From positions 62,001-126,000 of the forward strand of contig MCFE01000192.1 of the NCBI GenBank assembly GCA_002104905.1: a DNA stretch of 64,000 bases, in the 5' to 3' direction. The position numbers were made by a program, and so were the translations under genes. The notes under the pieces are model-generated. The model did no database searches, had not been told where the DNA came from, and was given only the letters and a program-made list of their open reading frames with translations. Each line of letters begins with the position of its first letter. Position 1 is the stretch's first letter. This document shows positions 1 to 23,387 of this stretch, in pieces. The DNA comes from Basidiobolus meristosporus CBS 931.73 (lineage: Eukaryota > Fungi > Basidiobolomycota).

Positions 1-1113
1 AACAGATTCGGCCGTAAGTGGACGCTTATATGCAACAATGCCTTCTTCATTGTCGGTGCTATCCTTGTTGCCACTGCTACCACCGTGGCTCAGTTCGTGG
101 CTGGCCGTGTGATCATCGGTATTGCTTGTGGTGCGGCCTCCGTAGTGGCCCCAATGTATGTTGCCGAGATCTCCACCAATGGAGCTCGTGGCATCCTCGG
201 AACCATGTACCAGCTTTTCACGGTGATTGGCATCTTGGTTGCCAACTGCGCCGGTATTGGATTGACCAGCGTTCCAGGATGGAGATACTTGTTCGGCATT
301 GCCATCTTCCCTCCCATCCTCCAAGTGATCCTTCTGTTGTTCTGTACTGAGTCGCCAGGATATCTGCTGTCCAAGAACAAGGTCGATGAGGCTAGGGTTG
401 CGTTGCAAAAGCTCCGCAGTGGATGCGTGATTGACAACGAGTTCAACGAGATGATCAGTGCTGCTCACAGTGAGGAAGGAAAGGAAGAGGCACTCAACAT
501 CGTCCAGGTGCTCAAGAACAGCCGTCTCTGCAAGCTCTTCATCGTTGCCATGATCATGCACGCCTACCAACAGCTCTCCGGCATCAACAGTGTCATCTTC
601 TACTCCACCAACATCTTCAACGACATCTTCGGTGTGGACAACTCCCAGTATGTCACAGTCGGTGTCGGGTGCCTCAACCTGGTGATGACCCTTGTCTCGG
701 TAGCCCTGATCGACCGTGTTGGCAGAAAGCCATTGTTGTACACCAGTGGTATTGGCATGTGCGTGTGCTCAGTGCTGATTGTGATTGCCTCCATCTATGG
801 GGTCAACACACTCATGGTTGTCGCTGTGATGCTCTTCGTGGCTACCTTCGCTGTCGGCCTTGGTCCAATCCCCTGGATGTTGATGCCTGAGCTCATTCCC
901 ACCTATGCCATCGGAGCTGCCAGCTCCACTGCCACTGCCGTCAACTGGCTGTTCAACTTTGTCATCGGTCAAACCTTCCCTCCAATGAAGGATGCACTTG
1001 GCAACTACTCCTTCCTTCCCTACGCTGTTATCTGTGCCCTTGGCATTGTGTATACCTTCTTCCTAGTCCCAGAAACCAAAGGACGCAACCCCAACGAAAT
1101 CCCCAGAGACTAA
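1..1113 (+). CDS. GLUT-like MFS sugar porter, copy 1 (5' end lies upstream of the window)
   Basis: Frame 1 is open from base 1 (NRFGRKWTL...) to TAA at 1111-1113. Sugar porter motifs present: QQLSGINSVIFYS, DRVGRK, GLGPIPW, VPETKG. Confidence 0.95.
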   Translation, partial: NRFGRKWTLICNNAFFIVGAILVATATTVAQFVAGRVIIGIACGAASVVAPMYVAEISTNGARGILGTMYQLFTVIGILVANCAGIGLTSVPGWRYLFGIAIFPPILQVILLLFCTESPGYLLSKNKVDEARVALQKLRSGCVIDNEFNEMISAAHSEEGKEEALNIVQVLKNSRLCKLFIVAMIMHAYQQLSGINSVIFYSTNIFNDIFGVDNSQYVTVGVGCLNLVMTLVSVALIDRVGRKPLLYTSGIGMCVCSVLIVIASIYGVNTLMVVAVMLFVATFAVGLGPIPWMLMPELIPTYAIGAASSTATAVNWLFNFVIGQTFPPMKDALGNYSFLPYAVICALGIVYTFFLVPETKGRNPNEIPRD

Positions 1114-1179
1114 GCATTACAGTAATTGGTTTTCATTGCATTCACTCACCATCATATCATAATACATCTGCGCTTGATT

Positions 1180-1192
1180 TATAAATAATAAA
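1180..1192 (+). terminator. Putative polyadenylation signal of copy 1
   Basis: TATAAATAATAAA about 67 nt after the stop codon; a related motif follows every transporter copy. Confidence 0.55.
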
Positions 1193-2789
1193 TTTGACAT
1201 TTCCATTCAGCTAATTAGAATTATTTTCTACGAGGCATAATAAATAACTACGATACTTATCTAACCTCTGTATATAACGATCTTAAGGTTGATAATATAA
1301 CACCGCGGCCATGTAAATTACCACATTACTATATTCGAGCACTTTAGATTTACATGGTCGCGTACACATAAGTTAGAATAGCACGTGTGTGAGGTGAAAG
1401 TGTAAGAAATCCCGAGAATACAAATTTCTGTACTCTAAAATTTATACATATTGGTAATCCCAGAAGTAATCATCTTCAGCAGTTAACAAACTTGGCACCA
1501 GCTGCATGATTGCACTTACCACTTTAGTCAATCTCCGCTATAAAAAGCCAATTATTCGTGAGGCATTCGCGACAACGAACCTCTTCCCAAACTTCTAGAG
1601 TCCGCAATCCGTTTAAGGAAATTCATGGGTAGCTACTCAGCATTTCATAGGGATTTTGGAACATCTTTTCAGAGCAGTTCGGACGTTCTATTATGGTTAA
1701 TCAATGCCTATAACTTGAATAATTGCCCACTTTCCTAGGTTTTGGTGGAGACAATAATTTACACTGAGGTATGAGATCTCTGGCTTCTCGAGACACCATA
1801 TTCTACGCCATCATATTCTAGGAAATGGCTCGGTGTAATTTGGATTCTGGCTAGGCTGTACTTTGCGATGGATTCACTTGTTCGTTGTCCTATACCATTT
1901 GAGCATCTTGAAACCATTTCAACATTGACCGCTCCGCTCCCAAATACCCCGAATCCGTGCTCATTAAGTCCTAAATTGGCAGAGATTATAGCCATCTTAC
2001 GTCTCCACATACCAATTGAAATATGGGCCATCAGTTTATTGGTGTTTGACCTAATTTGTTAGAGCTGGATTAGTCGGGAACTAGCTGGAGTAAAAGCATC
2101 TTCTACCTCTCCTGCCTAGCTCTCAGAGTCAAGTGAGCGTATTTCTGACGTGCCACAAGGTAGGTGTCCTGAATGTACTCTGCCAGCTCTCAGATTGACC
2201 TTTACTCGCGAGAAGCCATTCAAACTCTGGTAAACCAATATCTTGGATGGGATTCAAATTCCCTGGAATATCAAATCCCTCACTCAGTTCTGCCCTCGAA
2301 TCCAGATCGTATATCTAGAATATATGGATTTGGATGGAACATTCCATTGGTGAATCTTTACGGGCTCTGAGGTTTCACTCTTCCATAATGGAAATGGTTT
2401 CATTGGAAGCGGTGTTTCAGCGCCCGATTTGGGCACCTTTTCGATCGAGCGGTATTCGCGCTACCTGAGCATAGATTTGCTATTGGATTTTCGGGTACCG
2501 ACCCGCTTTTGGTGATGGAATTTATTTCTCGAGGCCCTCTGCTCGTATTGAGGTTGGTGCATTCACCCCGTTGGATGAGTGTCCAGAATTTAGGCCCTCG
2601 GTGGGTCGTATGGTAAGTTTAAAGTGGCCAAATCATCTATTTCGTGCCTCATATGAATTTAGTAACCGCTGAAAAATTCTAGATGACTATATTGAATAGA
2701 GATCGCGGTTAATCTAATGCACCCAAACAGGGGTGAGTTACCCTAGTGAGTCGGAGTTGGTAGCCGAAAAAGTGCAGTCGAAATCCCCT

Positions 2790-2797
2790 TATAAATA
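2790..2797 (+). promoter_or_regulatory. TATA box of hexokinase
   Basis: TATAAATA 50 nt before gccATG at 2847; similar spacing to the TATA boxes of the transporter genes. Confidence 0.6.
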
Positions 2798-2846
2798 CAT
2801 CATGGCTCGCGGCGTTGAAGGCAGATCAAATCCAAATACCTCCGCC

Positions 2847-4235
2847 ATGTCTCCAATCACCCTTAGCGAGAATCAAATGTCTGCCTTGGTTGAGCTTGAA
2901 TCCCAATTCAAGCTCTCCGAACAGAAGCTCAGAGAGATCGTGGATGCTTTCATCTGTGACATGGAAAAGGGCCTAGCTACTCCAGGCAGAGATATGGCCA
3001 TGATTCCTTCTTTCGTTACTGGACGTCCCACCGGTCAAGAAACTGGTTCGTATTTGGCTTTGGATCTTGGAGGTACTAACTTCCGTGTGTGCTTGGTTGA
3101 ATTAAAGGGAAACAGCGATTTTTCCATCTCTCAACACAAGTACACTGTTTCGGATGAGTTGAAGAGCGGTGACGGTAAACTCTTGTTCGACTTCTTTGCC
3201 AAGTGCATTGATGATTTCATCACCCTCCGCCCCGAGACTGAAGATCTTCGTCATGCTCCACTTATTCCTCTTGGCTTCACTTTCTCATTCCCTATCAACC
3301 AGACCGCTATCAACCGCGGTAAGCTCTTATGCTGGACTAAGAGCTTCACCGCTACCAATGTTGTGGGTCATGATGTAGCTCAATTGCTGCAGGACGCCTT
3401 GAATCGTAGACACATGAGCAACATTAAGGTTGCTGCCCTGGTCAACGATACCGTCGGAACTATGTTGGCAGCCGCCTATGCCGAGCCCTCGACCAGTGTT
3501 GGAGTCATCTTTGGTACTGGTACCAATACTGCTTACATCGAGCGCATTGAGAACATCCCTAAATGGCAAGGATCCATGGAGGACGCAGAGATGGCCATCA
3601 ACATGGAATGGGGGGCCTTCGGTAATGACAAGAAGGTTCTTCCAGTTACACAGTACGACAACCGTCTGGACAACTCATCACCTGAGCCATTCCACCAGGT
3701 GTTCGAGAAGATGATTTCCGGACTGTACCTTGGTGAGATTACTCGTAACATCCTGATCGACTTGATCGACAGAAACATCCTCTTCAGAGCACGCTGCTCG
3801 GTGGAGATGAACCAACCCTTCAACTTTGACACAGCTTATGTGTCATCGATCATCTCCGATAACAGTGCGGATTTGGAGGAAATCAAGTTGATTCTAGAGA
3901 ACACCATGGGAATCCCTGAGACCACTGCTAGCGATCGCCAGTTGGTCAAGTCGGTCGCCCAGTTGGTAGCTGAGCGTGCAGCTCAATTGAGTGGTGCCGC
4001 ATTGTCTGCCGTTCTTCTCAAGAGAAAGGATCTCCTTACTCAACAAGTGACCGTTGGTGTCGATGGTAGCGTGTTCCAGTTCCTTCCAGGCTTCTCGGAA
4101 CAATTGAAGAAGTGTTTGACCCAAATCCTTGGTGAGGAATTCGCCAGCAATGTCAAGACCGCCATGGCTAAGGATGGTAGCGGCGTCGGAGCCGCCTTGA
4201 CCGCTATGATGGCCTGTAAAAAATCCGCCAACTAG
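2847..4235 (+). CDS. HXK: Hexokinase, intronless, about 462 aa
   Basis: Motifs LALDLGGTNFRV, LGFTFSFP, VNDTVGT, GVIFGTGTN, INMEWGAF, FEKMISGLYLGE, DGSVF, DGSGVGAA. Start placed at ATG 2847 (Kozak-like, downstream of the TATA box); ATG 2802 is an in-frame alternative. Confidence 0.95.
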   Translation: MSPITLSENQMSALVELESQFKLSEQKLREIVDAFICDMEKGLATPGRDMAMIPSFVTGRPTGQETGSYLALDLGGTNFRVCLVELKGNSDFSISQHKYTVSDELKSGDGKLLFDFFAKCIDDFITLRPETEDLRHAPLIPLGFTFSFPINQTAINRGKLLCWTKSFTATNVVGHDVAQLLQDALNRRHMSNIKVAALVNDTVGTMLAAAYAEPSTSVGVIFGTGTNTAYIERIENIPKWQGSMEDAEMAINMEWGAFGNDKKVLPVTQYDNRLDNSSPEPFHQVFEKMISGLYLGEITRNILIDLIDRNILFRARCSVEMNQPFNFDTAYVSSIISDNSADLEEIKLILENTMGIPETTASDRQLVKSVAQLVAERAAQLSGAALSAVLLKRKDLLTQQVTVGVDGSVFQFLPGFSEQLKKCLTQILGEEFASNVKTAMAKDGSGVGAALTAMMACKKSAN

Positions 4236-4539
4236 ATTCGAGCTCATTCCCAATTTTGTCACGTCATTCCTAATTTTCCAATATGAAAATTACCTTTCAT
4301 ATGTAATATATTTCAATAAAGTCTAGATTGATCGATACCCCGAGTGACCAGTAATTTACGTAAGTGCAAATTTGTGGTTCAGTCACCAAGTGTCGCACGT
4401 GGAATTAAGCGGGATGGTGTATAGACCTGCCAACTATACGGATTTACACACGCTTTTGTTATCAGTGTCCATACTTAGGTCCCGAGTATTATGTAAGATC
4501 GTCATGTGTCAAGTATTTGCACTTTTCTATACAGGTTAA

Positions 4540-4768
4540 AGGTATCAAAGAGATCAGCCGAAGTTCAACAGCTTCACAATGAGCAGACAGAAGCGATCAC
4601 AATAAGCCATGCAAAAATATACTTCAACACCATTGGTATACAGGGATACCTTTCTTCCAATACGGCAAAAGAGGGTCATCAACAGATCGAGGCATCCAAC
4701 GTCAACTATGACATATTGTGACCCGATTGCCCCGAAGATATCGTTGAAACTGGATGAAGTAGAGAATG
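4540..4768 (-). pseudogene. Degraded sugar porter fragment (TM7-TM10 region)
   Basis: FNDIFGAIGSQYVIVDVGCLDLLMTL..RIGRK aligns to FNDIFGVDNSQYVTVGVGCLNLVMTL..RVGRK of the intact copies, with deletions and no start. Confidence 0.8.
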
Positions 4769-5496
4769 CCAATGTTACAATAGGCGTACAACAAAGACCT
4801 TTTCACCGTACAAAACGCCAATGTCCAGTTTGTATACGTTTGAAAAGATGCCGCCAAAACCAGATACGAATACACTCAGATCATACATTAAAGTCACCGA
4901 AAAGCAAACGCCTACATCAGATACAAGTTCCGAAATAAAGGAATCCCAGTGGTGTTAGTGGTAAAATGGTCACTCTGGCGAAGAGGCTATTGGACAGTGT
5001 AGTTTTTTTAGTACTATTTCTCTGGGTCATCGTTGATGGCGCGAATAGCCAAGTCCTACACCATAGACGCTTAGGGGTAAGCGGGTGGGTCAGTATTGGT
5101 AAAGGTTTGATATGTTTCAGTTAAGAACCAGAAGATTGAACACGTTCATATAGTGGTCCAAGTTGAGCCAATTTTCCAGAATTAATATCATACTGGTATC
5201 TAGACAGAAACAATGTCCATCAATTCCAACTCGATCAAATCATTGCTTGCGGAATCGTGATCGAGTAATTTATGTGAAGTAAATTCTGTAATAAACTTAG
5301 GATATCCGACTCCATGGATGTGTAAATGAAAGTGCCATTGGTGAACATCGCATGAACAAGGGAGATGTGACATGTGAGTGGAAATCACTATCGCCATGCC
5401 AATAATAGTAGAACCAATTTCCACATGTACTGGGAGAGTAAACTCAATGTTTCCAGATATCAGCGGTCGACCTCACCAATTGAAGATTGGTAAGTG

Positions 5497-5509
5497 TTTA
5501 TTATATACA
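5497..5509 (-). terminator. Putative polyadenylation signal, copy 2
   Basis: TGTATATAATAAA on the minus strand, downstream of the stop codon. Confidence 0.55.
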
Positions 5510-5575
5510 ATGTGATTATTTCCGAAGATGATAGGTAGAGGATGGGTTATATCAGGGGGTTATTCCACGAAATAT

Positions 5576-6985: not shown

Positions 6986-7038
6986 AAATGTAAGGATAAA
7001 TAATATTGGATGATGCACCTAACGGCGATGCATACTTG

Positions 7039-7046
7039 TATTTATA
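7039..7046 (-). promoter_or_regulatory. TATA box, copy 2
   Basis: TATAAATA 54 nt upstream of the ATG. Confidence 0.6.
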
Positions 7047-7697: not shown

Positions 7698-7710
7698 TTT
7701 ATTATGTACA
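7698..7710 (-). terminator. Putative polyadenylation signal, copy 3
   Basis: TGTACATAATAAA on the minus strand. Confidence 0.55.
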
Positions 7711-7789
7711 ATGCTAATGTTTCCAACCACGGTAGACGATGGGTGGAGTTAGGTAAAGAAGTTCGTTGTATAAAACATTTAGCAATCAA

Positions 7790-9199
7790 TTACTCCTTAA
7801 CCATCTCATTAGGGTTACGACCCTTAGTCTCAGGGACCAGGAAGAAGGTGTACGCAATGCCAAGGGCACAAATGACTGCATAGGGAAGGAAAGAGTAGTC
7901 ACCAAGTGCGTCCTTCATTGGAGGGAAGGTTTGACCGATGACAAAGTTGAACAGCCAGTTGACGGCAGTGGCAGTGGAGCTGGCAGCTCCGATGGCATAG
8001 GTGGGAATGAGCTCAGGCATCAACATCCAGGGGATGGGACCAAGGCCGACAGCGAAGGTGGCCACAAAGAGCATCACAGCGACAACCATGAGTGTGTTGA
8101 CCCCATAGATGGAGGCAATCACGATCAGCACTGAGCACACACACATGCCAATACCACTGATGTACAGCAATGGCTTTCTGCCAACACGGTCGATCAGGGC
8201 TACCGAGACGAGGGTCATCACCAGGTTGAGGCACCCGACACCGACTGTGACATACTGGGAGTTGTCCACACCGAAGATGTCGTTGAAGATGTTGGTGGAG
8301 TAGAAGATGACACTGTTGATGCCGGAGAGCTGTTGGTAGGCGTGCATGATCATGGCAACGATGAAGAGCTTGCGAAGTCTGAAGTTCTTGAGCACCTGGA
8401 CAATGTTGAGTGTGTCCTCCTTGCTCTCCTCACTGCGAGCTGCGCTGGTCAGCTCGTTGAACTCGTTGTCAATCACACATCCGCTGCGGAGCTTTTGCAG
8501 GGCAATTCTGGCCTCGTCGACCTTGTTCTTGGACAAGAGATAGCCTGGGGTCTCAGTGCAGAATGGCAACAGGATCACTTGGAGGATGGGAGGGAAGATG
8601 GCAATGCCGAACAAGTATCTCCATCCTGGAACACTGGTCAACCCGAGACCAGCACAGTTGGCAGCCAAGATACCGATGACCATGAACAGCTGGTACATGG
8701 TACCGAGGATACCACGAGCACCTGAGGTGGAGATCTCGGCAACATACATCGGGGCGACCACAGAGCCAGCACCGCAAGCAATACCAATGATCACACGACC
8801 GGCCACGAACTGGGCCACGGTGGTGGCAGTGGCCACGAGGATGGCACCAGCGATGAAGAAGAAGTTGTTGAACAGCAGGGTCCACTTACGGCCGAATCTG
8901 TTGGCAGCTGGACCGGCACTGAGGCCACCCACGAGACCACCAATGGCAAGGATACCCACGGCAAGGCCCCAAGTACCAGACGACATGGGAAGACAGGCAG
9001 GGAGGCCACCATCACCATGGGCACTCATGTCACAGTTTCTGATGACTGACTCGGGAGTGTTGGGGGCGGCGCTATTGAATCCAGCGGCGAATGAAGCCAA
9101 GGCAGCGGTGATGCCGCACAACCAAATGTAAGGAGTAAACTTGACATCCTTGGAATCACAAGTAGTGATATCGGAGTTATGATTTTTCTTGTCGGTCAT
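7790..9199 (-). CDS. GLUT-like sugar porter, copy 3 (469 aa)
   Basis: Intact ORF, near-identical to copy 2. Confidence 0.96.
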   Translation of the reverse strand: MTDKKNHNSDITTCDSKDVKFTPYIWLCGITAALASFAAGFNSAAPNTPESVIRNCDMSAHGDGGLPACLPMSSGTWGLAVGILAIGGLVGGLSAGPAANRFGRKWTLLFNNFFFIAGAILVATATTVAQFVAGRVIIGIACGAGSVVAPMYVAEISTSGARGILGTMYQLFMVIGILAANCAGLGLTSVPGWRYLFGIAIFPPILQVILLPFCTETPGYLLSKNKVDEARIALQKLRSGCVIDNEFNELTSAARSEESKEDTLNIVQVLKNFRLRKLFIVAMIMHAYQQLSGINSVIFYSTNIFNDIFGVDNSQYVTVGVGCLNLVMTLVSVALIDRVGRKPLLYISGIGMCVCSVLIVIASIYGVNTLMVVAVMLFVATFAVGLGPIPWMLMPELIPTYAIGAASSTATAVNWLFNFVIGQTFPPMKDALGDYSFLPYAVICALGIAYTFFLVPETKGRNPNEMVKE

Positions 9200-9939: not shown

Positions 9940-9994
9940 TTAAATCATTAATTATTAGTGCAGTAACAAAGTGATGAGTTGGTGGGTAAGATAT

Positions 9995-11404
9995 TTACTC
10001 CTTCACCATCTCATTAGGGTTACGACCCTTAGTCTCAGGGACCAGGAAGAAGGTGTACGCAATGCCAAGGGCACAAATGACTGCATAGGGAAGGAAAGAG
10101 TAGTCACCAAGTGCGTCCTTCATTGGAGGGAAGGTTTGGCCAATGACAAAGTTGAACAGCCAGTTGACGGCAGTGGCAGTGGAGCTGGCAGCTCCGATGG
10201 CATAGGTGGGAATGAGCTCAGGCATCAACATCCAGGGGATGGGACCAAGGCCGACAGCGAAGGTAGCCACAAAGAGCATCACAGCGACAACCATGAGTGT
10301 GTTGACCCCATAGATGGAGGCAATCACGATCAGCACTGAGCACACGCACATGCCAATACCACTGGTGTACAACAATGGCTTTCTGCCAACACGGTCGATC
10401 AGGGCTACCGAGACGAGGGTCATCACCAGGTTGAGGCACCCGACACCGACTGTGACATACTGTGAGTTGTCCACACCGAAGATGTCGTTGAAGATGTTGG
10501 TGGAGTAGAAGATGACACTGTTGATGCCGGAGAGCTGTTGGTAGGCGTGCATGATCATGGCAACGATGAAGAGCTTGCGAAGTCTGAAGTTCTTGAGCAC
10601 CTGGACAATGTTGAGTGTGTCCTCCTTGCTCTCCTCACTGCGAGCTGCGCTGGTCAGCTCGTTGAACTCGTTGTCGATCACACATCCGCTGCGGAGCTTT
10701 TGCAGGGCAATTCTGGCCTCGTCGACCTTGTTCTTGGACAAGAGGTAGCCTGGGGTCTCAGTGCAGAATGGCAACAGGATCACTTGGAGGATGGGAGGGA
10801 AGATGGCAATGCCGAACAAGTATCTCCATCCTGGAACACTGGTCAACCCAAGGCCGGCACAGTTGGCAGCCAAGATACCGATGACCATGAACAGCTGGTA
10901 CATGGTACCGAGGATACCACGAGCACCTGAGGTGGAGATCTCGGCAACATACATCGGGGCGACCACAGAGCCAGCACCGCAAGCAATACCAATGATCACA
11001 CGACCGGCCACGAACTGGGCCACGGTGGTGGCAGTGGCCACGAGGATGGCACCAGCGATGAAGAAGAAGTTGTTGAACAGCAGGGTCCACTTACGGCCGA
11101 ATCTGTTGGCAGCTGGGCCGGCACTGAGGCCACCAACGAGACCACCAATGGCGAGGATACCTACGGCAAGGCCCCAAGTACCAGACGACATGGGAAGACA
11201 GGCAGGGAGGCCACCATCACCATGGGCACTCATGTCACAGTTTCTGATGACTGACTCGGGAGTGTTGGGGGCGGCGCTATTGAATCCAGCGGCGAATGAA
11301 GCCAAGGCAGCGGTGATACCGCACAGCCAAATGTAAGGAGTGAACTTGACATCCTTGGAATCACAAGTAGTGATATCGGAGTTATGATTTTTCTTGTCGG
11401 TCAT
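9995..11404 (-). CDS. GLUT-like sugar porter, copy 4 (469 aa)
   Basis: Intact ORF, near-identical to copies 2 and 3. Confidence 0.96.
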   Translation of the reverse strand: MTDKKNHNSDITTCDSKDVKFTPYIWLCGITAALASFAAGFNSAAPNTPESVIRNCDMSAHGDGGLPACLPMSSGTWGLAVGILAIGGLVGGLSAGPAANRFGRKWTLLFNNFFFIAGAILVATATTVAQFVAGRVIIGIACGAGSVVAPMYVAEISTSGARGILGTMYQLFMVIGILAANCAGLGLTSVPGWRYLFGIAIFPPILQVILLPFCTETPGYLLSKNKVDEARIALQKLRSGCVIDNEFNELTSAARSEESKEDTLNIVQVLKNFRLRKLFIVAMIMHAYQQLSGINSVIFYSTNIFNDIFGVDNSQYVTVGVGCLNLVMTLVSVALIDRVGRKPLLYTSGIGMCVCSVLIVIASIYGVNTLMVVAVMLFVATFAVGLGPIPWMLMPELIPTYAIGAASSTATAVNWLFNFVIGQTFPPMKDALGDYSFLPYAVICALGIAYTFFLVPETKGRNPNEMVKE

Positions 11405-11468: not shown

Positions 11469-12289
11469 TTATTATATGCTAGAGCCACATCCCAATATTG
11501 GGAGTGTGGAATTGAATCAATATTCCAAATAAAGCAAGGAATTTACAGTGCGACACACGCTTTTGGACGGAAAATGGATCTCAATCAAACCTAAATGAAT
11601 GATTCTAGAATCATACATCAATGAAACAAGATTGCTCCAGACAAAAGCGCGCCAAAAGGAGCTCTACCAGGGAACATTAATTTATTTACTATCACTAATT
11701 ATGGTTGCCCACCTCTAACTCTATTTCTCAACTGAGGGGAAGTATACCAACCCAAACAGTATTGTATATATCTGTATATGAACCTATGTAACGAGTTTGT
11801 CTATTTATCTTGTCAGGAGAGTTATAGAACGATCTTGGTATTGCCAAAAAGGTTAAGTGTCTTAGTTGTTGAAAGAATACATGTTCGTACCCCCTTCAAT
11901 AGCTTTGAAAGATACGTTCAACGCGATGGCTACGCGTGTACTGAAAATCACACTTGCTTCGAAATGTATAGTCACATGTGTCTTGCATTGGGGTGTTAGG
12001 ATACAAACAGATTCTAGTATCACAACCATCATCTGAAACGCTTCATGCCGATAGTTACTAGATGAAATTATGAATGTTCTTAATACAGGAAAAAACAACC
12101 CGTTACATGAGTAATTATGAATGCACCTCGCGTTAGTTCAGTGTATTTTATTCGTTGCATAAAATTATAAGCATATGTATTATTACATACCATTACATTG
12201 ATATTTGTAGTAAGTCCTTGACTATTTCTTTGAGTGTATGGCATTTGGGTAATAACAAAGTGAAACGAATAATTCATAGTTTTGATTGT

Positions 12290-12510
12290 GGAATTGGTAG
12301 CTCAAAAGGTGTATGTGGGGACGAGCTTGGGCATCAACATCGAAGGGATTGGGCCAAGGCCGATAGCGAAGGTGGCCACAAAGAGCATCACAGCGACAAC
12401 CATGAGTGTGTTGCCGGATGGTCTAATGAACCCAAAGGTGATAATGGTCTCCTAAATGTAAGCAAGGAGAGAGAACATGATTACCTTGGTCTTTCAAGTA
12501 GCAATATCGC
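12290..12510 (-). pseudogene. Internally deleted sugar porter relic
   Basis: About 12330-12413 closely matches the NTLMVVAVMLFVATFAIGLGPIP-coding DNA. 12435-12510 resembles the N-terminal DITTCDSK..PYIW region, joined with most of the gene missing. Confidence 0.75.
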
Positions 12511-13315
12511 AGCTGTATATCGTTATATCCAGCATCATCGGAAGTTACAGATAATAAAGGTGGAATGATATTCCAGGCGATGAAGATTCTATCTGCTTGT
12601 GAATGCATAGTAAGCACTTGATCGTACAGATCGTTCGAAAACCAGGTATTCCTCAAATGACTGTTCCACGCTTTAAGTAGGTTTAATTTCTCCGGATTTG
12701 GATGATTCCAAATTATGGATTTTTCCTCATAATGGAACTATCAATGGACAAGCGTTATGTAGCAAAGGGGTGGGGGGGGGCTATATATGTAATAATGCTT
12801 CCAAAGTTGGTTTTTAAATTTGATTTTGCTCGATATATGATGATGCACTCGCTCAAGAAGGGCGATCGGTATTAGAATAGATAGACCACTGGGAATTTAT
12901 CGGGATGAATCTTGCGGATACGAAAAAGCCATCCAGGAGATCCTGTCCCATCCAGATGTAGCATTATTCTGAATCCTTGCAGTATTCGTTAGATGAATTT
13001 GCCATCCATGAACTGATCACCATATCGTGTTTCTTGGATCAACATCAGAGATGGCAAATGAATGAAGGAATTAAATATCTACACAGTGAATCCCAAGAGG
13101 TATGTTCAATTCAGATAATTATCTATACAACTGGAGTGCCACAAACTGTAGCATGAGAATCAGTATTCGAAGAATAATGGGCGTCGGCCAACAGTAGCAA
13201 CCAATTTTTAAAAACGTATGGTGATTTCCAAATTATCAACGCGAAAAACGTTCAACTTCGAAAAGCAAATTATGATTGAATGTCAGGTTACCATAAACAA
13301 TTTAAATCAAGCATG

Positions 13316-13328
13316 TTTATTATGTACA
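13316..13328 (-). terminator. Putative polyadenylation signal, copy 5
   Basis: TGTACATAATAAA on the minus strand. Confidence 0.55.
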
Positions 13329-13373
13329 AAGCTGTTTGCTACTAGTGGATTGCATAAACTGTTAAAATACTGA

Positions 13374-14783
13374 TCACTCTTTAACCATCTCATTAGGATT
13401 GCGACCTTTGGTCTCCGGGACCAGGAAGAAGGTGTACGCAATACCAAGGGCACAAATGATTGCATAGGGAAGGAAGGAGTAGTCACCAAGTGCATCCTTC
13501 ATTGGAGGGAAGGTTTGACCAATGACGAAGTTGAACAGCCAGTTGACGGCAGTAGCAGTGGAGCTGGCAGCTCCGATGGCATAGGTGGGAATGAGCTCAG
13601 GCATCAACATCCAGGGGATGGGACCAAGGCCGACAGCGAAGGTAGCCACAAAGAGCATCACAGCGACAACCATGAGTGTGTTGACCCCATAGATGGAGGC
13701 AATCACAATCAGCACTGAGCACACGCACATCCCAATACCACTGGTGTACAACAATGGCTTTCTGCCAACACGGTCGATCAGGGCTACCGAGACGAGGGTC
13801 ATCACCAGGTTGAGGCATCCGACACCGACTGTGACATACTGGGAGTTGTCCACACCGAAGATGTCGTTGAAGATGTTGGTGGAGTAGAAGATGACACTGT
13901 TGATGCCGGAGAGCTGTTGGTAGGCGTGCATGATCATGGCAACGATGAAGAGCTTGCGAAGTCTGAAGTTCTTGAGCACCTGGACAATGTTGAGTGTGTC
14001 CTCCTTGCTCTCCTCACTGCGGGCAGCGCTGGTCAGCTCGTTGAACTCGTTGTCAATCACACATCCGCTGCGGAGCTTTTGCAGGGCAATTCTGGCCTCG
14101 TCGACCTTGTTCTTGGACAACAGATAGCCTGGGGTCTCAGTGCAGAATGGCAACAGGATCACTTGGAGGATGGGAGGGAAGATGGCAATGCCGAACAAGT
14201 ATCTCCATCCTGGAACGCTGGTCAACCCAAGGCCGGCGCAGTTGGCAGCCAAGATACCGATGACCATGAACAGCTGGTACATGGTACCGAGGATACCACG
14301 AGCACCTGAGGTGGAGATCTCGGCAACATACATCGGGGCCACCACCGAACCAGCACCGCAAGCAATACCAATGATCACACGACCGGCCACGAACTGGGCC
14401 ACGGTGGTAGCAGTGGCCACGAGGATGGCACCAGCGATGAAGAAGAAGTTGTTGAACAGCAGGGTCCACTTACGGCCGAATTTGTTGGCAGCTGGGCCGG
14501 CACTAAGGCCACCAACGAGACCACCAATGGCGAGGATACCTACGGCAAGGCCCCAAGTACCAGACGACATGGGAAGACAGGCAGGGAGGCCACCATCACC
14601 ATGGGCACTCATGTCACAGTTTCTGATGACTGACTCGGGAGTGTTGGGGGCGGCGCTATTGAATCCAGCGGCGAATGAAGCCAAGGCAGCGGTGATACCG
14701 CACAGCCAAATGTAAGGAGTGAACTTGATGTCCTTAGAGTCACAAGTAGTAATATCGGAGTTGTGGATCTTTTTGTCTGACAT
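13374..14783 (-). CDS. GLUT-like sugar porter, copy 5 (469 aa)
   Basis: Intact ORF, MSDKK-type N-terminus. Confidence 0.96.
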   Translation of the reverse strand: MSDKKIHNSDITTCDSKDIKFTPYIWLCGITAALASFAAGFNSAAPNTPESVIRNCDMSAHGDGGLPACLPMSSGTWGLAVGILAIGGLVGGLSAGPAANKFGRKWTLLFNNFFFIAGAILVATATTVAQFVAGRVIIGIACGAGSVVAPMYVAEISTSGARGILGTMYQLFMVIGILAANCAGLGLTSVPGWRYLFGIAIFPPILQVILLPFCTETPGYLLSKNKVDEARIALQKLRSGCVIDNEFNELTSAARSEESKEDTLNIVQVLKNFRLRKLFIVAMIMHAYQQLSGINSVIFYSTNIFNDIFGVDNSQYVTVGVGCLNLVMTLVSVALIDRVGRKPLLYTSGIGMCVCSVLIVIASIYGVNTLMVVAVMLFVATFAVGLGPIPWMLMPELIPTYAIGAASSTATAVNWLFNFVIGQTFPPMKDALGDYSFLPYAIICALGIAYTFFLVPETKGRNPNEMVKE

Positions 14784-14838: not shown

Positions 14839-14846
14839 TATTTATA
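14839..14846 (-). promoter_or_regulatory. TATA box, copy 5
   Basis: TATAAATA 56 nt upstream of the ATG. Confidence 0.6.
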
Positions 14847-15614: not shown

Positions 15615-15627
15615 TTTATTATTTACA
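15615..15627 (-). terminator. Putative polyadenylation signal, copy 6
   Basis: TGTAAATAATAAA on the minus strand. Confidence 0.55.
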
Positions 15628-15722
15628 TAGTGTTGGTGACCGATTAGCATGCTTGGATATTGATTTGTGAGTTACACGATGAGTAGTAGCTCGGTCACCA
15701 TCGTATTAGGACTATTAGATCC

Positions 15723-17132
15723 TCATTGCTTCACCATCTCATTGGGATTGCGACCCTTAGTCTCGGGTACCAAGAAGAAGGTGTACAAAATACCAAGAGC
15801 GCAAATGATTGCATAGGGAAGGAAGGAGTAGTCACCAAGTGCGTCCTTCATTGGAGGGAAGGTTTGGCCAATGACAAAGTTGAACAACCAGTTGACGGCA
15901 GTGGCAGTGGAGCTGGCAGCTCCGATGGCATAGGTGGGAATGAGCTCAGGCATCAACATCCAGGGGATTGGACCAAGGCCGACAGCGAAGGTAGCCACAA
16001 AGAGCATCACAGCGACAACCATGAGTGTGTTGACCCCATAGATGGAGGCAATCACAATCAGCACTGAGCACACGCACATGCCAATACCACTGGTGTACAA
16101 CAATGGCTTTCTGCCAACACGGTCGATCAGGGCTACCGAGACGAGGGTCATCACCAGGTTGAGGCACCCGACACCGACTGTGACATACTGGGAGTTGTCC
16201 ACACCGAAGATGTCGTTGAAGATGTTGGTGGAGTAGAAGATGACACTGTTGATGCCGGAGAGCTGTTGGTAGGCGTGCATGATCATGGCAACGATGAAGA
16301 GCTTGCGAAGTCTGAAGTTCTTGAGCACCTGGACAATGTTGAGTGTGTCCTCCTTGCTCTCCTCACTGCGAGCAGCGCTGGTCAGCTCGTTGAACTCGTT
16401 GTCAATCACACATCCGCTGCGGAGCTTTTGCAGAGCAATTCTGGCCTCGTCGACCTTGTTCTTGGACAAGAGGTAGCCTGGGGTCTCAGTGCAGAATGGC
16501 AACAGGATCACTTGGAGGATGGGAGGGAAGATGGCAATGCCGAACAAGTATCTCCATCCTGGAACACTGGTCAACCCGAGACCGGCACAGTTGGCAGCCA
16601 AGATACCGATGACCATGAACAGCTGGTACATGGTACCGAGGATACCACGAGCACCTGAGGTGGAGATCTCGGCAACATACATCGGGGCCACCACCGAACC
16701 AGCACCGCAAGCAATACCAATGATCACACGACCGGCCACGAACTGGGCCACGGTGGTAGCAGTGGCCACGAGGATGGCACCAGCGATGAAGAAGAAGTTG
16801 TTGAACAGCAGGGTCCACTTACGGCCGAATCTGTTGGCAGCTGGACCGGCACTGAGACCACCAACGAGACCACCAATGGCAAGGATACCTACGGCAAGGC
16901 CCCAAGTACCAGACGACATGGGAAGACAGGCAGGGAGGCCACCATCACCATGGGCACTCATGTCACAGTTTCTGATGACTGACTCGGGAGTGTTGGGGGC
17001 GGCGCTATTGAATCCAGCGGCGAATGAAGCCAAGGCAGCGGTGATGCCGCACAGCCAAATGTAAGGAGTGAACTTGATGTCCTTAGAGTCACAAGTAGTA
17101 ATATCGGAGTTGTGGATCTTCTTGTCTGACAT
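15723..17132 (-). CDS. GLUT-like sugar porter, copy 6 (469 aa)
   Basis: Intact ORF; protein identical to copy 7 in the ORF track. Confidence 0.96.
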   Translation of the reverse strand: MSDKKIHNSDITTCDSKDIKFTPYIWLCGITAALASFAAGFNSAAPNTPESVIRNCDMSAHGDGGLPACLPMSSGTWGLAVGILAIGGLVGGLSAGPAANRFGRKWTLLFNNFFFIAGAILVATATTVAQFVAGRVIIGIACGAGSVVAPMYVAEISTSGARGILGTMYQLFMVIGILAANCAGLGLTSVPGWRYLFGIAIFPPILQVILLPFCTETPGYLLSKNKVDEARIALQKLRSGCVIDNEFNELTSAARSEESKEDTLNIVQVLKNFRLRKLFIVAMIMHAYQQLSGINSVIFYSTNIFNDIFGVDNSQYVTVGVGCLNLVMTLVSVALIDRVGRKPLLYTSGIGMCVCSVLIVIASIYGVNTLMVVAVMLFVATFAVGLGPIPWMLMPELIPTYAIGAASSTATAVNWLFNFVIGQTFPPMKDALGDYSFLPYAIICALGILYTFFLVPETKGRNPNEMVKQ

Positions 17133-19099
17133 ACTTAAAACTAGAATGGAAAACCTTTGATGATACTTAGCTATATAAATAAGATACTCATCTCAGGTGC
17201 AAGGGCTAGAATTAGATGAATTAACAATTAATAGTGTACCGTATATGTGATTAATCTTGCCATATTTGTACGGATCTAGAAATAACGAGATACTGAATTT
17301 GAGTTTACTGGGCTTCACCTTTAATTTCCGGATTTGTTCGGAGTTCATTTGGTTTTGTACTTTTGCCACTACGTTGTGATCCACCTCACCAATGAATCTA
17401 CCTCTTTGGATTAGAGTGTTGTTAGTGGCTTGTTGGTCTTTGCTACATTTAGATGGTGAGAATGTGTTTTATCTCAGCTGGATAACTTGACCTGGATAAA
17501 TTTGATACATATCTCCTGGGATCTTCGGAGATTGGAATGTACTATGACTGTGATTTATGTACAGTGTACTGAAGGATAGCCAGCTCATCATACACAGTGC
17601 TTGGCTAATCGAAGAAAGCGTACTGAGATCAATACATTACAGGGGGAAGGTCCAAATTATCAATTCTCAGCATTCTTGAAGTTATTTTGGGGTCGACCAG
17701 TCCAGATATTCAATTTTTGAAGTTATTCGTGTATCTAAAATTGGCATTTAGGTTTAACGTTGTATTGTGATGATCTGACGTGTAATGTTGCGCCAAACCC
17801 TTACGATGTGTTTTTTGTGATACTTTATATGCAGCCAATAGGACCTTGTAGTTTAAAACCTTCAATATCCGGAATAACCATGTACAGCATATCATCGGTT
17901 GAGTTCTACCCCTGGCCACCCCTTGCCTAGAGTATGAATCGATGCTTTAGTCGCTCATGCATGAACTATGGTAATGCCTGAAGTTCTGGCCAAAATATAC
18001 TATATTTCGATCGATATATTAGAGTTTGTTACTGTATAGAGGAAGCATACCCTTTGTTGGTGCGACCTTTTCATGATTGCATATCTTTCTGTGTATATAC
18101 GGACCATCTAGTTTCAACTGCCATATGATCCTGTATCTAGCAATACCAGTGGCTTGAATTAAGTAGTAGGCAACAATATGGTTAAGTATAGTTTTGGCGC
18201 TAGGTCTAGGTTCGTAGGACCTACAAACGAGTGGTCAAAAATTGCTTATCCTACTGTTTCTTCATCCATGTCGTGTGTTGAGTGCTGCATATCAAAGAAG
18301 AACTGTAAATGAACTTGTCGATAACCTCCGTGTAGTTGCATAATATGCAGTTTTTACTAATATTACTACTGGAGCCTAGCTTTTCAAGACATACAATCGA
18401 TCCTTTCACGTTACAAACGAAATATTGACTTTGAAAGTTTGGAAACAACACCAAGTGATATACTCCCATACTTTTTCAATCATTTAGGATTCCGCCTCAA
18501 AGTACAGTTTACTAAACGTAAATAGTCGAAGGTATCCATCGTACTGATGTATCTTCCACTCTACAAGAACTCACAGACTCTAACTATCTTTGATATACTT
18601 GTCCACATGCATTTGATGAACCCTACTAGGTTTTTACGTATCGGTGCAATGATACCTTACGAAAAGTGAGTATTCAAATAACGGTGTGTTTTCTGGAGCG
18701 CTTATTCAAGTAGAACAAACCCTACCGGGTAAGTCTCAATAATACCTTCACTCTAACGCACTGATACCTTCTATTTTAGAGAGCTCATTTTACCTTTACA
18801 AATCCCACTAATGGTTCGCCAAAGTAGTGAGGAATTATATCACATTTGGCGCAATGTTTCTTTCATTTTATAAATACGGTAATTGCTATTTAACTACACT
18901 CGGCACGCACTCGATATGGCAATTGGCTTTGGAGCACATTCCATTAAAGGAACGAATCCTTGATTCTGGAATCATCCAAATCTGGAGGAATCAATCCTAC
19001 CTAGAGCATACATGAGTAATTTGGGTAATAGTCGGGCTTTTGAGCGCCTCATGCAGGTATATTTCATTTTCCATTACACTTGGACGAAAAGATTGCTAC

Positions 19100-19107
19100 T
19101 ATAAATA
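19100..19107 (+). promoter_or_regulatory. TATA box, copy 7
   Basis: TATAAATA 58 nt upstream of the ATG. Confidence 0.6.
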
Positions 19108-19164
19108 CCAGATCATCATTGGTCTTGAGCATCATTCAACAATTATTACTTCTTACCTACTGAA

Positions 19165-20574
19165 ATGTCAGACAAGAAGATCCACAACTCCGATATTACT
19201 ACTTGTGACTCTAAGGACATCAAGTTCACTCCTTACATTTGGTTGTGCGGTATCACCGCTGCCTTGGCTTCATTCGCCGCTGGATTCAATAGCGCCGCCC
19301 CCAACACTCCCGAGTCAGTCATCAGAAACTGTGACATGAGTGCCCATGGTGATGGTGGCCTCCCTGCCTGTCTTCCCATGTCGTCTGGTACTTGGGGCCT
19401 TGCCGTAGGTATCCTCGCCATTGGTGGTCTCGTTGGTGGCCTTAGTGCCGGTCCAGCTGCCAACAGATTCGGCCGTAAGTGGACCCTGCTGTTCAACAAC
19501 TTCTTCTTCATCGCTGGTGCCATCCTCGTGGCCACTGCCACCACCGTGGCCCAGTTCGTGGCCGGTCGTGTGATCATTGGTATTGCTTGCGGTGCTGGCT
19601 CTGTGGTCGCCCCGATGTATGTTGCCGAGATCTCCACCTCAGGTGCTCGTGGTATCCTCGGTACCATGTACCAGCTGTTCATGGTCATCGGTATCTTGGC
19701 TGCCAACTGTGCCGGTCTCGGGTTGACCAGTGTTCCAGGATGGAGATACTTGTTCGGCATTGCCATCTTCCCTCCCATCCTCCAAGTGATCCTGTTGCCA
19801 TTCTGCACTGAGACCCCAGGCTATCTGTTGTCCAAGAACAAGGTCGACGAGGCCAGAATTGCCCTGCAAAAGCTCCGCAGCGGATGTGTGATTGACAACG
19901 AGTTCAACGAGCTGACCAGCGCTGCTCGCAGTGAGGAGAGCAAGGAGGACACACTCAACATTGTCCAGGTGCTCAAGAACTTCAGACTTCGCAAGCTCTT
20001 CATCGTTGCCATGATCATGCACGCCTACCAACAGCTCTCCGGCATCAACAGTGTCATCTTCTACTCCACCAACATCTTCAACGACATCTTCGGTGTGGAC
20101 AACTCCCAGTATGTCACAGTCGGTGTCGGGTGCCTCAACCTGGTGATGACCCTCGTCTCGGTAGCCCTGATCGACCGTGTTGGCAGAAAGCCATTGTTGT
20201 ACACCAGTGGTATTGGCATGTGCGTGTGCTCAGTGCTGATTGTGATTGCCTCCATCTATGGGGTCAACACACTCATGGTTGTCGCTGTGATGCTCTTTGT
20301 GGCTACCTTCGCTGTCGGCCTTGGTCCAATCCCCTGGATGTTGATGCCTGAGCTCATTCCCACCTATGCCATCGGAGCTGCCAGCTCCACTGCCACTGCC
20401 GTCAACTGGCTGTTCAACTTTGTCATTGGCCAAACCTTCCCTCCAATGAAGGACGCACTTGGTGACTACTCCTTCCTTCCCTATGCAATCATTTGCGCTC
20501 TTGGTATTTTGTACACCTTCTTCTTGGTACCCGAGACTAAGGGTCGCAATCCTAATGAGATGGTGAAACAATGA
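19165..20574 (+). CDS. GLUT-like sugar porter, copy 7 (469 aa), divergent from copy 6
   Basis: Intact ORF on the opposite strand. Confidence 0.96.
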   Translation: MSDKKIHNSDITTCDSKDIKFTPYIWLCGITAALASFAAGFNSAAPNTPESVIRNCDMSAHGDGGLPACLPMSSGTWGLAVGILAIGGLVGGLSAGPAANRFGRKWTLLFNNFFFIAGAILVATATTVAQFVAGRVIIGIACGAGSVVAPMYVAEISTSGARGILGTMYQLFMVIGILAANCAGLGLTSVPGWRYLFGIAIFPPILQVILLPFCTETPGYLLSKNKVDEARIALQKLRSGCVIDNEFNELTSAARSEESKEDTLNIVQVLKNFRLRKLFIVAMIMHAYQQLSGINSVIFYSTNIFNDIFGVDNSQYVTVGVGCLNLVMTLVSVALIDRVGRKPLLYTSGIGMCVCSVLIVIASIYGVNTLMVVAVMLFVATFAVGLGPIPWMLMPELIPTYAIGAASSTATAVNWLFNFVIGQTFPPMKDALGDYSFLPYAIICALGILYTFFLVPETKGRNPNEMVKQ

Positions 20575-20631
20575 AGATCTTGCGCAGATTTCAAGCCCAC
20601 CTGTGTACCTTTGACTAATTATAATCCATAC

Positions 20632-20644
20632 TGTAAATAATAAA
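20632..20644 (+). terminator. Putative polyadenylation signal, copy 7
   Basis: TGTAAATAATAAA downstream of the stop codon. Confidence 0.55.
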
Positions 20645-21915
20645 TTCTGTCACCAGCACAACGATAACAAGATCCCACAGATTTGCTTAGAATAGTATTG
20701 AAGTACAGTATTTCACCAGTGATAACACTTGGTATTTCTCCAATTGCTATGTATCCCGCACCATAAATAAGAATAGAGGCTTATAGGACAGAACTACTCT
20801 TCCAGGTGCTCCAAAATGTTGGTGCCTACCAAAAAAATCAAAACACTCATACATTTACCAACACTAATATAGCTATGAAAGTTGTCGAGTCTTGGTCCAC
20901 TACTCACTTAGTACGGGGCTTCGGACCTAAACATACCCCATTGTTCAGAAAAGCGGAAGTATTCGGGTGATAGAGAAATTTTGGATCCGCCATTCAACTT
21001 TTTAAAACCCTTCAAAACGGACTGACCCGGCCAACTACGAGTATTTACCCAATGTAAAGCAATCCTCGTGTCAGAAAGTAATCTGGATGCTAGATCCATT
21101 CCACATGCCACCACATCAGTTATTTTATGGATGAAAATGCTGGTGATTGGGAATGGATCAAATCAGTGTGCCAACTATCAATCAGAATTCACACGAATGA
21201 TTTGCTATCGCTCTCCGTAATACAGGACTACGAGGCAACAGGGCGAGCAGAGATGCTTTACTTAAGACTGTTGGCAATACGGAAAATCATGAGGAAGACG
21301 AAATAACGGCATTCTGTCTCCAACCAGGTGAAAATGAGTATTATTGCGCAACCTTGGATAATGAAACAAAGTGAATCTCCACTTATAAATCACTTGCATC
21401 AAGCACATGTGTGTGGGGCGTATCTTTCCTCAAGACACATGGTTCAGCCATTGTTTCATGCTACTCCGTCCCTTGGGCAGAATGACATCGAGCGCCTAAA
21501 CAGGGTGGCAGATCCATGTCTCAATGACCAAAAATTTCCGAAGCGCATATATATAGGACGCAAAGATCAGCAGCAGCTCAATATGCATCCTTTCAGATGA
21601 TGAATCCCTTTGGTCATCACTTTGTAGGATTCGAACGAAATGATAGGCTGCAGAGGATGTTTTAATCATGCCTCACAAACTGTACCACCGATCAGGAAAC
21701 CACCTGTCTCTTGAAACCGCCCTCACTACCAGGTTTTGAAATGCGCTGAAACTGTTTTCGGTTGTTGAAATGAAACAGCTTCCTAAATAGTAAAGATGCA
21801 GGGTGGATTGTAGCGGTAAGCGGGAAGCGCGAATACAGGAACTCAGCCATTAGCATAAAAGGAACCCAATCTTGCTTCGAAATCCTGATCAATTCACCAT
21901 ACAATTATTAGTGAC

Positions 21916-23387
21916 ATGCCTGAGAAAAAAAGTTCGGGTGTTCATGACGTTACTACTCGTGATTCCCGAGATATTTCGTTTACTCCCTACATCTGGCTGT
22001 GCGGGGTGACGGCCGCCCTGGCATCCTTCACGGCCGGCTATAATAGCGCGGCCCCAAACACTCCGGAATCAGTGATCAGAAATTGCCAATCCGAAGGTAG
22101 CGGAGGTGGACTTCCGCCGTGCATCTCCATGAGCTCGGGTACCTGGTAATACTGTTGCGCGGCTGGCTATTTCGAATGGATACTAATCAGTCAACCGTTG
22201 GTAGGGGGCTTGCAGTTGGGATTCTTGCGATAGGTGGTCTGGTAGGAGGATTGTGTGCTGGAACGGCTGCCGACCGACTTGGACGGCGATTGACTTTGCT
22301 CTTGAACAACTTCTTTTATATTGTGGGCGCTGTACTGGTGGCCACCGCCACCACCACTGCCCAGTTTGTGGTTGGTAGAATCATCGTTGGTATCGGTTGT
22401 GGTATAGGCTCCGTCGTGGCTCCCCTGTATGTCGCCGAAATTGCGACGGATGGTTCTCGCGGAGTGCTTGGAACGATGTATCAGCTGTTCATGGTCATCG
22501 GGATCTTGGTTGCCGACTGTATCGGTCTCGGCCTTTCCAATATCCCAGGGTGGAGGTATCTCTTCGGCATCGCTATCTTCCCACCGATTCTACAGATCAT
22601 CCTACTATCGATGTGTACTGAGACGCCAAGCTACCTACTCTCTAAGCACAAGCCAGATGAGGCTAGAATGGCCCTACAGAAGTTGCGAAGAGGCTGTGTG
22701 ATAGATGAGGAGTTTCAGCAGCTTCAATTGGCGATGGGTAGAGAAGATCAAAGCGAATCCGAGAATCTCAACCTGTTGCAGGTGATTAAGAACTCCCATC
22801 TCCGAGGGCTGTTTGTCATCGCGTTGCTGATGCATGCGTATCAACAGTTATCCGGCATCAACAGTGTGATCTACTACTCAACCTCGATCTTCAACGACAT
22901 TTTCGGGGTCAGCAATTCCCAATACGTCACCGTTGGCGTCGCGGGGATCAACCTGGTCATGACTCTGGTGTCGGTGGCCCTGATCGATCGTGCTGGTAGA
23001 AAGCCACTGTTGTACTCGAGCGGGGTTGGCATGTGTATCTGCTCAGTGCTGATTGTGCTCGCCTCGGTGCTTCATATCGATGTGCTCATGGTCATTGCCG
23101 TCATGCTATTTGTAGCTTCGTTCGCCGTGGGTCTTGGGCCTATCCCGTGGATGTTAGTCCCCGAGTTGGTCCCCACATACGCGGTCGCTGCCACCAGCTC
23201 CACCGCGACTGCAGTAAATTGGCTCTTCAACTTCGTCATTGGACAAGTCTTTCCACCGATGAAGGATGGCCTAAAGAATTACTCTTTTCTGCCGTTCGCG
23301 GTGATATGTATTTGCGGCACCTTGTTCGTGATGTTCTTTGTCCCCGAAACCAAAGGTCGGAAGGCATCCGGTGCCCCAGGACAGTAG
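21916..23387 (+). CDS. Divergent GLUT-like sugar porter, copy 8; join(21916..22145,22205..23387), 470 aa
   Basis: Two ORFs overlapping in different frames are joined by a GT-AG intron that restores SSGTW-GLAVG; the spliced length of 1413 nt is in frame. Confidence 0.92.
22146..22204 (+). other. 59-nt spliceosomal intron
   Basis: GTAATA donor, TACTAAT branch point at about 22181, TAG acceptor; phase 2 within the Trp codon. Confidence 0.88.

Follow-up and report, generated by a model that had tools for sequence, protein, structure and literature searches.

Hexokinase genes within an array of GLUT-like transporter genes in Basidiobolus: a candidate uptake-and-trap cluster

Why does a hexokinase gene lie in the midst of an array of sugar transporter genes, and does their proximity carry any meaning? 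The question is raised by a locus of the gut fungus Basidiobolus meristosporus CBS 931.73 (assembly GCA_002104905.1, contig MCFE01000192.1, 136,784 bp), from which a stretch of 64,000 nucleotides, here called the window, was analyzed; subtracting 62,000 from a contig position gives the window position. The initial annotation of this stretch described a candidate sugar uptake-and-trap cluster with eight intact transporters, two transporter relics and one hexokinase. Our map, built by tblastn with one transporter and the hexokinase as queries against the window and by Pfam searches, gives the same count, and the hexokinase is indeed the sole non-transporter gene in 23 kb, the NCBI calls containing no other gene between the transporters. 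That a canonical hexokinase and GLUT-like carriers lie physically clustered is therefore confirmed, and the cluster extends to the left past the window edge. We consider it probable that the locus represents a Basidiobolus-specific genomic cluster joining hexose entry, by GLUT-like carriers of the major facilitator superfamily (MFS), to hexose-6-phosphate trapping by a canonical 50-kDa hexokinase.

Upstream of the window, the NCBI gene calls place three more transporters, all on the plus strand (Ta, Tb, and Tc). A second hexokinase, HK-A (contig 51695-53068, minus strand, 457 amino acids), is arranged head-to-head with Ta, and the next gene beyond HK-A is an unrelated Mem_trans gene. The full cluster contains two hexokinases, 11 intact transporters and two relics within 33.7 kb (contig 51695-85387), and no additional gene is found inside these 33.7 kb in the NCBI calls. 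Non-homologous genes for two consecutive steps, hexokinase and transporter, are thus physically adjacent, as in a metabolic gene cluster. The part of the cluster that falls in the window contains the following features, given in window coordinates.

<1..1113, plus strand: transporter T1; its 3' 370 codons lie in the window and its start 297 bases before the window edge; 469 amino acids, intact on the contig; member of subgroup II with Ta and Tb
2802..4235, plus strand: hexokinase HK-B; 477 amino acids as annotated
3390..3721, plus strand: perfect-identity run of 332 bp between HK-B and HK-A; gene-conversion tract
4611-4781, minus strand: transporter relic A; aligns to residues 294-355 with 47% identity
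5576..6985, minus strand: transporter T2; 469 amino acids, intronless
7790..9199, minus strand: transporter T3; 469 amino acids, intronless; the reference copy in searches
9995..11404, minus strand: transporter T4; 469 amino acids, intronless
12245-12412, minus strand: transporter relic B; aligns to residues 368-423 with 70% identity
13374..14783, minus strand: transporter T5; 469 amino acids, intronless
15723..17132, minus strand: transporter T6; 469 amino acids, intronless; head-to-head with T7
19165..20574, plus strand: transporter T7; 469 amino acids, intronless; protein identical to T6
21916..23387, plus strand: transporter T8; 470 amino acids, with the ancestral intron retained at 22146-22204; an old paralogue with 68% nucleotide identity to the array, orthologue of B. 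ranarum P0123

The proteins encoded on both sides of this pairing have clear family assignments. In all intact transporter copies the Sugar_tr family (PF00083) covers profile positions 3-447 of 452, with Pfam E values of 1e-97 to 1e-114, and the closest solved structures are those of human GLUT3 (E 4.8e-82) and GLUT1 (E 5e-80). Aligned with GLUT1, T3 retains the motifs QQLSGIN, GRK, and PETKGR, and its Asn42 is aligned with GLUT1 Asn29 and matches the corresponding Asn of GLUT3. This site in the first transmembrane helix (TM1), occupied by Asp27 in the proton symporter XylE and by Asn29 in GLUT1, is viewed as one of the main features that decide between uniport and symport (PMC5491310), and an Asn at this position thus fits uniport. 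We infer that these carriers transport glucose or a related hexose by uniport. Seven of the eight residues that we take to form the glucose-contact set of the GLUT1 and GLUT3 structures (Gln161, Gln282, Gln283, Asn288, Asn317, Glu380, Trp388, and Asn415) are retained in T3, including the equivalents of Gln161, Asn317, Trp388, and Asn415. Other, more distant Sugar_tr paralogues are present in the B. meristosporus genome, for example P0128 and P0145.

The hexokinases contain both family domains at full length (Hexokinase_1, PF00349, positions 3-201 of 201; Hexokinase_2, PF03727, positions 2-242 of 242; E values of 1e-76 to 1e-82), and the structure of Kluyveromyces lactis Hxk1 matches at 355 bits. 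The ATP- and sugar-binding motifs of the enzyme and the catalytic Asp in N-D-T-x-G-T are established hallmarks of the family; each of the four B. meristosporus paralogues, namely HK-A, HK-B, and a pair at a second locus described below, carries DLGGTNFR, LGFTFSFP, NDTVGT (which includes the catalytic Asp), GTGTN, and EWGAF in intact form. The identity of the two partners as a GLUT-like facilitator and a canonical hexokinase is thereby well supported by family profiles and motifs. No further hexokinase appeared among the top search hits for B. meristosporus, in a search that was not exhaustive.

The pairing of hexokinase and transporter recurs elsewhere in the genus. At a second B. meristosporus locus (MCFE01000080.1), the gene order is hexokinase (minus strand), hexokinase (plus strand), transporter (plus strand); the hexokinase pair is head-to-head, and the transporter, P0125, which is 72% identical to T3 and belongs to the same clade, lies 2.65 kb downstream of the hexokinase. 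A contig of B. ranarum (L006) matches this layout, with a hexokinase (plus strand) followed after 2.66 kb by a transporter (plus strand), and on another (L009) the orthologue of T8 lies head-to-head with an array-type fragment that lacks the intron and is 88% identical to T3. Synonymous sites between the orthologues of B. meristosporus and B. ranarum are saturated (nonsynonymous divergence, dN, is 0.09-0.12), so the arrangement of hexokinase and transporter is old; judging from gene order, an ancestral hexokinase-transporter pair predates the split of the two species. All B. meristosporus members of the transporter clade in the database sit in the two loci.

The initial annotation had proposed synteny in related genomes as a check; the linkage does hold in B. 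ranarum, as it does at the second locus of B. meristosporus, but fails in four outgroups. In Neoconidiobolus thromboides and Calcarisporiella thermophila, the best homologue of the transporter has no hexokinase within 10 kb, and no transporter was found near the hexokinase in two assemblies of Dimargaris cristalligena. In Rhizopus microsporus (KZ303848.1; L012 5444-11593), a Sugar_tr gene encoding 541 amino acids lies 2.6 kb upstream of the hexokinase orthologue in divergent orientation. We rejected the idea that the linkage is ancient and common with Mucoromycota, since this Rhizopus protein comes from another subfamily, with about 30% identity to T3 and 22-30% to its GLUT-like relatives.

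Intron content offers a second view of the age of the array. T8 has a 59-nt intron (GT..AG, 22146-22204) with a TACTAAT branch site, inserted in phase 2 in the Trp codon of GTW-GLAV; without it, T8 reads as a 470-amino-acid frame identical to the NCBI model P0124, and this clean intron rules out that T8 is a frameshifted pseudogene. T8 shares one intron, in the same codon, with the transporter of the second locus and with the two full-length transporters of B. ranarum, and Ta, Tb, Tc, T1-T7, and the array-type fragment of B. ranarum are without it. This presence and absence across copies and species points to a single loss that predated both the species split and the expansion of the array. 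Retroposition is an unlikely origin for the intronless copies, since their homology ends at the stop codon, with no 3' untranslated region or poly(A) tail included, and since a separate TATA box precedes each copy; one old intron loss fits them better. As a separate matter of gene models, the NCBI model of T5 (515 amino acids, window 12302-14783) splices on relic B although the T5 open reading frame stops at 13374, and is likely a mis-annotation.

The transporter copies differ widely in their mutual similarity. In coding sequence, T2-T7 are 96-99% identical to one another, Ta, Tb, and T1 share 96-98%, and comparisons between these two subgroups give 87-88%; Tc is 74-75% identical to the remaining copies, and T8 64-69%. 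Synonymous divergence (dS) is 0.05-0.15 within subgroups, about 0.45-0.55 between them, and saturated for Tc and T8, with ratios of dN to dS of about 0.02-0.1 among the copies that indicate strong purifying selection. In blastn comparisons of units with 800-bp flanks, copy-to-copy homology spans from -69..+1 of the ATG to about 10 nt from the stop codon; even T6 and T7, at 98.9% identity, match only in the coding sequence, and the spacers of 0.8-2.0 kb are unique to each copy and unalignable. The identity is also a mosaic. In sliding windows, T1 and T3 are 78-87% identical over the 5' two-thirds and 96-98% over the 3' third; Ta and Tb are 80% identical over the first 50 codons and then 99-100%; and Tb and T1 are 98.4% identical despite the 74%-identical Tc in between. 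HK-A and HK-B, which lie on opposite strands 11.7 kb apart, are 58-73% identical in their 5' third and yet include the 332 bp of perfect identity.

Mosaic identity together with unalignable spacers suggests old duplicates that have been kept alike by conversion confined to the coding sequence. Judged by these alignments, the array consists of old duplicates homogenised by coding-sequence-limited gene conversion under strong purifying selection, and it has the marks of concerted evolution: mosaic identity of paralogues, homology that stops at the limits of the coding sequence, and flanks that have diverged. The near-identity of the copies might be taken for recent amplification, a view that has to be corrected, as recent tandem amplification is ruled out by spacers that cannot be aligned even between copies with a dS of 0.05. 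The head-to-head hexokinase pair of the second locus (MCFE01000080.1, L004 5834-11383) has a 320-bp perfect run, about 100% identity in the central and 3' part and 59-68% in the 5' third, a pattern by which we recognize gene conversion between inverted genes. The GC content of third codon positions (GC3) lies between 0.64 and 0.68 in the copies that undergo conversion, against 0.52 in Tc, which does not, and 0.61 in T8, and in HK-A it is 0.63 in the converted core versus 0.55 for the whole gene; this pattern is compatible with GC-biased gene conversion or with codon selection.

Outside Basidiobolus, the nearest transporter hits are from Calcarisporiella, Neoconidiobolus, Bifiguratus, Gamsiella, Piptocephalis, Ambispora, and Umbelopsis (41-49% identity), followed by animal GLUTs (35-39%) and oomycete HT1. 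In a quick maximum-likelihood tree with support from the SH-like approximate likelihood-ratio test (SH-aLRT) only, the cluster transporters form a Basidiobolus-only clade (SH-aLRT 99) within a clade of early-diverging fungi (98; Zoopagomycota and Mucoromycota), which stands beside the animal class I GLUTs. The hexokinases have relatives of 50-51% identity in Kickxellomycotina and Mucoromycota and of about 41% in vertebrates, and likewise form a Basidiobolus-only clade; its stem is long, at 1.03 changes per site, and sets it apart from the hexokinases of other early-diverging fungi. By these phylogenetic relations, both gene families are old fungal lineages of vertical origin. A transfer from animal to fungus, which the PDB matches to human GLUT1/3 and HK1 and the intronless genes might suggest, was ruled out, as the nearest single-domain relatives of either protein come from early-diverging fungi (44-49% identity for the transporter, 50-51% for the hexokinase); the high scores of vertebrate hexokinases, which lead the hit list, stem solely from their two domains, and the fungal-type intron in T8 and its relatives likewise counts against an animal import.

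Each gene of the cluster appears to be equipped for its own expression. The sequence TATAAATA is found at -59 to -65 from the ATG in eight transporter copies, with TATA-like variants at a similar distance in Ta, T6, and T8, and a TGTAnATAATAAA-like poly(A) signal follows 40-105 nt past the stop codon in every gene. These signals give every copy the appearance of a functional transcription unit that stands on its own. The cluster does not have the form of an operon with one shared mRNA: its genes lie on both strands, each with a TATA box near -60 and a poly(A) signal. The same signals bear on the start of HK-B, where TATAAATA is at -12 from the annotated ATG and at -57 from Met16. Since the latter spacing resembles the -59..-65 of the transporters, and since a second-locus hexokinase paralogue begins with MSPITL, as HK-B does from Met16, the start of HK-B is probably annotated 15 codons too far upstream, the real one being Met16 at window position 2847. 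At the second locus, a 44-nt patch about 300 nt upstream of the transporter (L004 13701-13744; L006 3561-3604) is 88.6% conserved between B. meristosporus and B. ranarum despite the saturated synonymous sites and constitutes a candidate cis-regulatory element; a search for this element in the main cluster did not find it there.

Taken together, these data point to a history in which an ancestral hexokinase-transporter pair was copied to the second locus. At the main locus, the transporter lost its single intron and multiplied to at least 13 copies (10 intronless copies and T8 intact, and two relics), and repeated conversion has kept their coding sequences alike, as it has the core regions of HK-A and HK-B. 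Many transporter copies would presumably raise uptake capacity, and the hexokinase linkage might have been retained since the two steps act as a unit in sink-driven uptake, possibly within a common chromatin or regulatory domain. An "uptake-and-trap" cluster is in this sense plausible: its genomic premise is sound, the genes being linked, kept in the genus, intact, and under selection, while its functional core (co-regulation, dosage, and glucose uniport) goes beyond the evidence of sequence. We put forward only tentatively, as one possibility, that the locus is a true eukaryotic uptake-and-trap module, with uniporter and sink hexokinase genes held together by selection and co-regulated, and with the transporter amplified and homogenised to set capacity. 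If true, the Zymomonas glf-glk operon would have a counterpart in a eukaryote, and we know of no earlier metabolic gene cluster that serves the very step by which sugar enters glycolysis.

A number of observations weigh against this module. The equivalent of GLUT1 Glu380 is Ala in T3 and the PESPR motif reads TETPG, and neither substrate nor kinetics can be read from sequence. A k-mer scan of hexokinase and transporter promoters found no specific common motif beyond the TATA box. The palindrome TTCTAGAA occurs 165-236 nt upstream of the start codons of T1, T3, T4, and T5 (window 9364, 11603, 15012; L003 14368), but it is a weak, post hoc signal, with 3 occurrences in the window versus 1.65 expected, which is not significant; co-regulation and a dosage effect of the cluster are matters that we infer. 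Orthologous adjacency is absent in all four outgroups (Neoconidiobolus, Calcarisporiella, Dimargaris, and Rhizopus), and all Basidiobolus cases may descend from one copied juxtaposition, which would speak for persistence and not for repeated origin; a single juxtaposition spread by segmental duplication is one evolutionary event and is thus not independent evidence of selection.

The lack of a specific promoter motif common to both gene types and the restriction of the adjacency to Basidiobolus among the genomes examined would also suit a historical accident, which we regard as the less likely account but as a serious rival. Hexokinase and transporter would then have become neighbours once in the Basidiobolus ancestor, duplication and amplification would have copied the arrangement without regulatory or selective meaning, and the linkage would persist because the genes are only 1-3 kb apart. 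The hexokinase clade and the transporter clade, each Basidiobolus-specific and monophyletic, fit such a single origin of the pair. However, both the adjacency and its spacing (2.65 versus 2.66 kb) have been preserved between species with saturated synonymous sites and otherwise unalignable spacers. Linkage has also been retained, despite inversions and birth-and-death within the array, by each of the four clade hexokinases and each of the 12 intact clade transporters found in B. meristosporus. Moreover, the two functions are consecutive steps of a pathway, which is unlikely for random neighbours, although this argument is post hoc.

Another account would leave the linkage meaningful and change the sugar. 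The cluster might consist of specialised paralogues for a non-glucose sugar (fructose, mannose, galactose, or glucosamine from the animal gut or insect cuticle), with housekeeping glucose entry encoded elsewhere. The long stem of the hexokinase clade, the Ala in place of the sugar-contacting Glu380 of GLUT1 and the distant Sugar_tr paralogues elsewhere in the genome would be in line with specialisation. We nevertheless consider this account improbable, as the canonical sugar- and ATP-binding motifs of the hexokinases are all intact, the majority of the GLUT1 glucose-contact residues are retained, amino-sugar catabolic genes (deacetylase, deaminase) are absent in and beside the cluster, and the non-exhaustive search brought up no other hexokinase among its top hits. 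Finally, although 96-99% similarity within subgroups could confuse assemblers, an over-expanded or mis-joined repeat, the artefact that the initial annotation had named as a danger, can be dismissed with near certainty, given that every copy has private substitutions and a spacer of 0.8-2.0 kb that is unique to it and cannot be aligned, that two diverged relics and two old paralogues (Tc and T8) are interspersed in the array, that PacBio reads underlie the assembly (PMC7466969), and that fragments of the arrangement occur independently in B. ranarum.

Returning to the joint cluster of hexose entry and trapping that we favor, several known systems resemble it in part. Full-text searches of the open-access literature found no description of a Basidiobolus hexokinase or of such a cluster, which is in agreement with the initial annotation but is not proof of novelty. 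Near-identical adjacent sugar-porter genes homogenised by recombination or conversion are known from yeast (HXT6/HXT7, HXT3-6-7) and trypanosomes (THT1/THT2), where the usual reading is higher uptake. The Basidiobolus array shares with them the side-by-side arrangement of homogenised, near-identical sugar-porter genes; it differs in that identity ends at the start and stop codons, spacers are unalignable, orientations are mixed, and hexokinases are embedded. We know of no hexokinase within the HXT and THT arrays. With the animal class I GLUTs (SLC2A1-4), the carriers have in common the Asn at the TM1 site, which is Asp in proton symporters, and the motifs QQLSGIN, GRR/K, and PETKGR, whereas they belong to an early-diverging-fungal clade and have Ala for Glu380 and TETPG for PESPR.

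The closest functional parallel is bacterial. In the glf-zwf-edd-glk operon of Zymomonas, the Glf uniporter is linked to glucokinase with coordinate expression, according to a passage of PMC2651186 that cites Barnell et al. (1992). The logic of uptake and trap is the same, the gene of an MFS sugar-porter uniporter being linked to that of the kinase that traps imported glucose; it is, however, a bacterial polycistronic operon with one transporter, a glucokinase of the ROK/bacterial type, and two Entner-Doudoroff enzymes. The Basidiobolus cluster, in contrast, comprises eukaryotic monocistronic genes on both strands, with 11 transporters and two eukaryotic hexokinases. Among fungi, the N-acetylglucosamine (GlcNAc) cluster of Trichoderma reesei (hxk3, dac1, dam1, ngt1, ron1, nag3), whose genes are co-induced through RON1, likewise places a hexokinase-family kinase beside an MFS transporter of the same pathway, NGT1 (PMC4950302). 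The giant GAL clusters of Torulaspora, in which GAL1-10-7 occur with GAL2, HGT1, PGM1, MEL1, and GAL4, also combine a sugar kinase with an MFS transporter and show tandem copies, relics, and rearrangements, and their authors treat hexokinase and glucokinase as steps outside the GAL cluster (PMC7898345). Both systems are from Ascomycota, serve alternative sugars, and include extra catabolic enzymes and a dedicated transcription factor, whereas the Basidiobolus cluster contains only canonical hexokinases and GLUT-like carriers, without a regulator or other enzyme gene and with far more transporter copies.

The locus may be of interest beyond this comparison. Most known metabolic gene clusters of fungi serve secondary metabolism or alternative sugars (GAL, MAL, GlcNAc), and a cluster of a facilitative carrier with a canonical hexokinase would carry the concept into central carbon metabolism, at its first step. 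Such a cluster would also offer a natural system in which to ask whether uniporter flux and the phosphorylation sink are co-tuned via gene dosage. Early-diverging fungi retain a GLUT-like lineage close to the animal class I GLUTs, and its members could serve as simple, intronless models of GLUT-type transport. The locus is further a clean example of conversion bounded by start and stop codons, which acts also between inverted hexokinases 11.7 kb apart.

Downstream of T8, at least 10 kb are without called genes, and the remainder of the window (23388-64000) is gene-poor, with 37-42% GC and decayed copia-type fragments. The copia-type remnants include a gag_pre-integrs domain at 44902-45360 and a weak match to an integrase C-terminal domain at 54727-55263.

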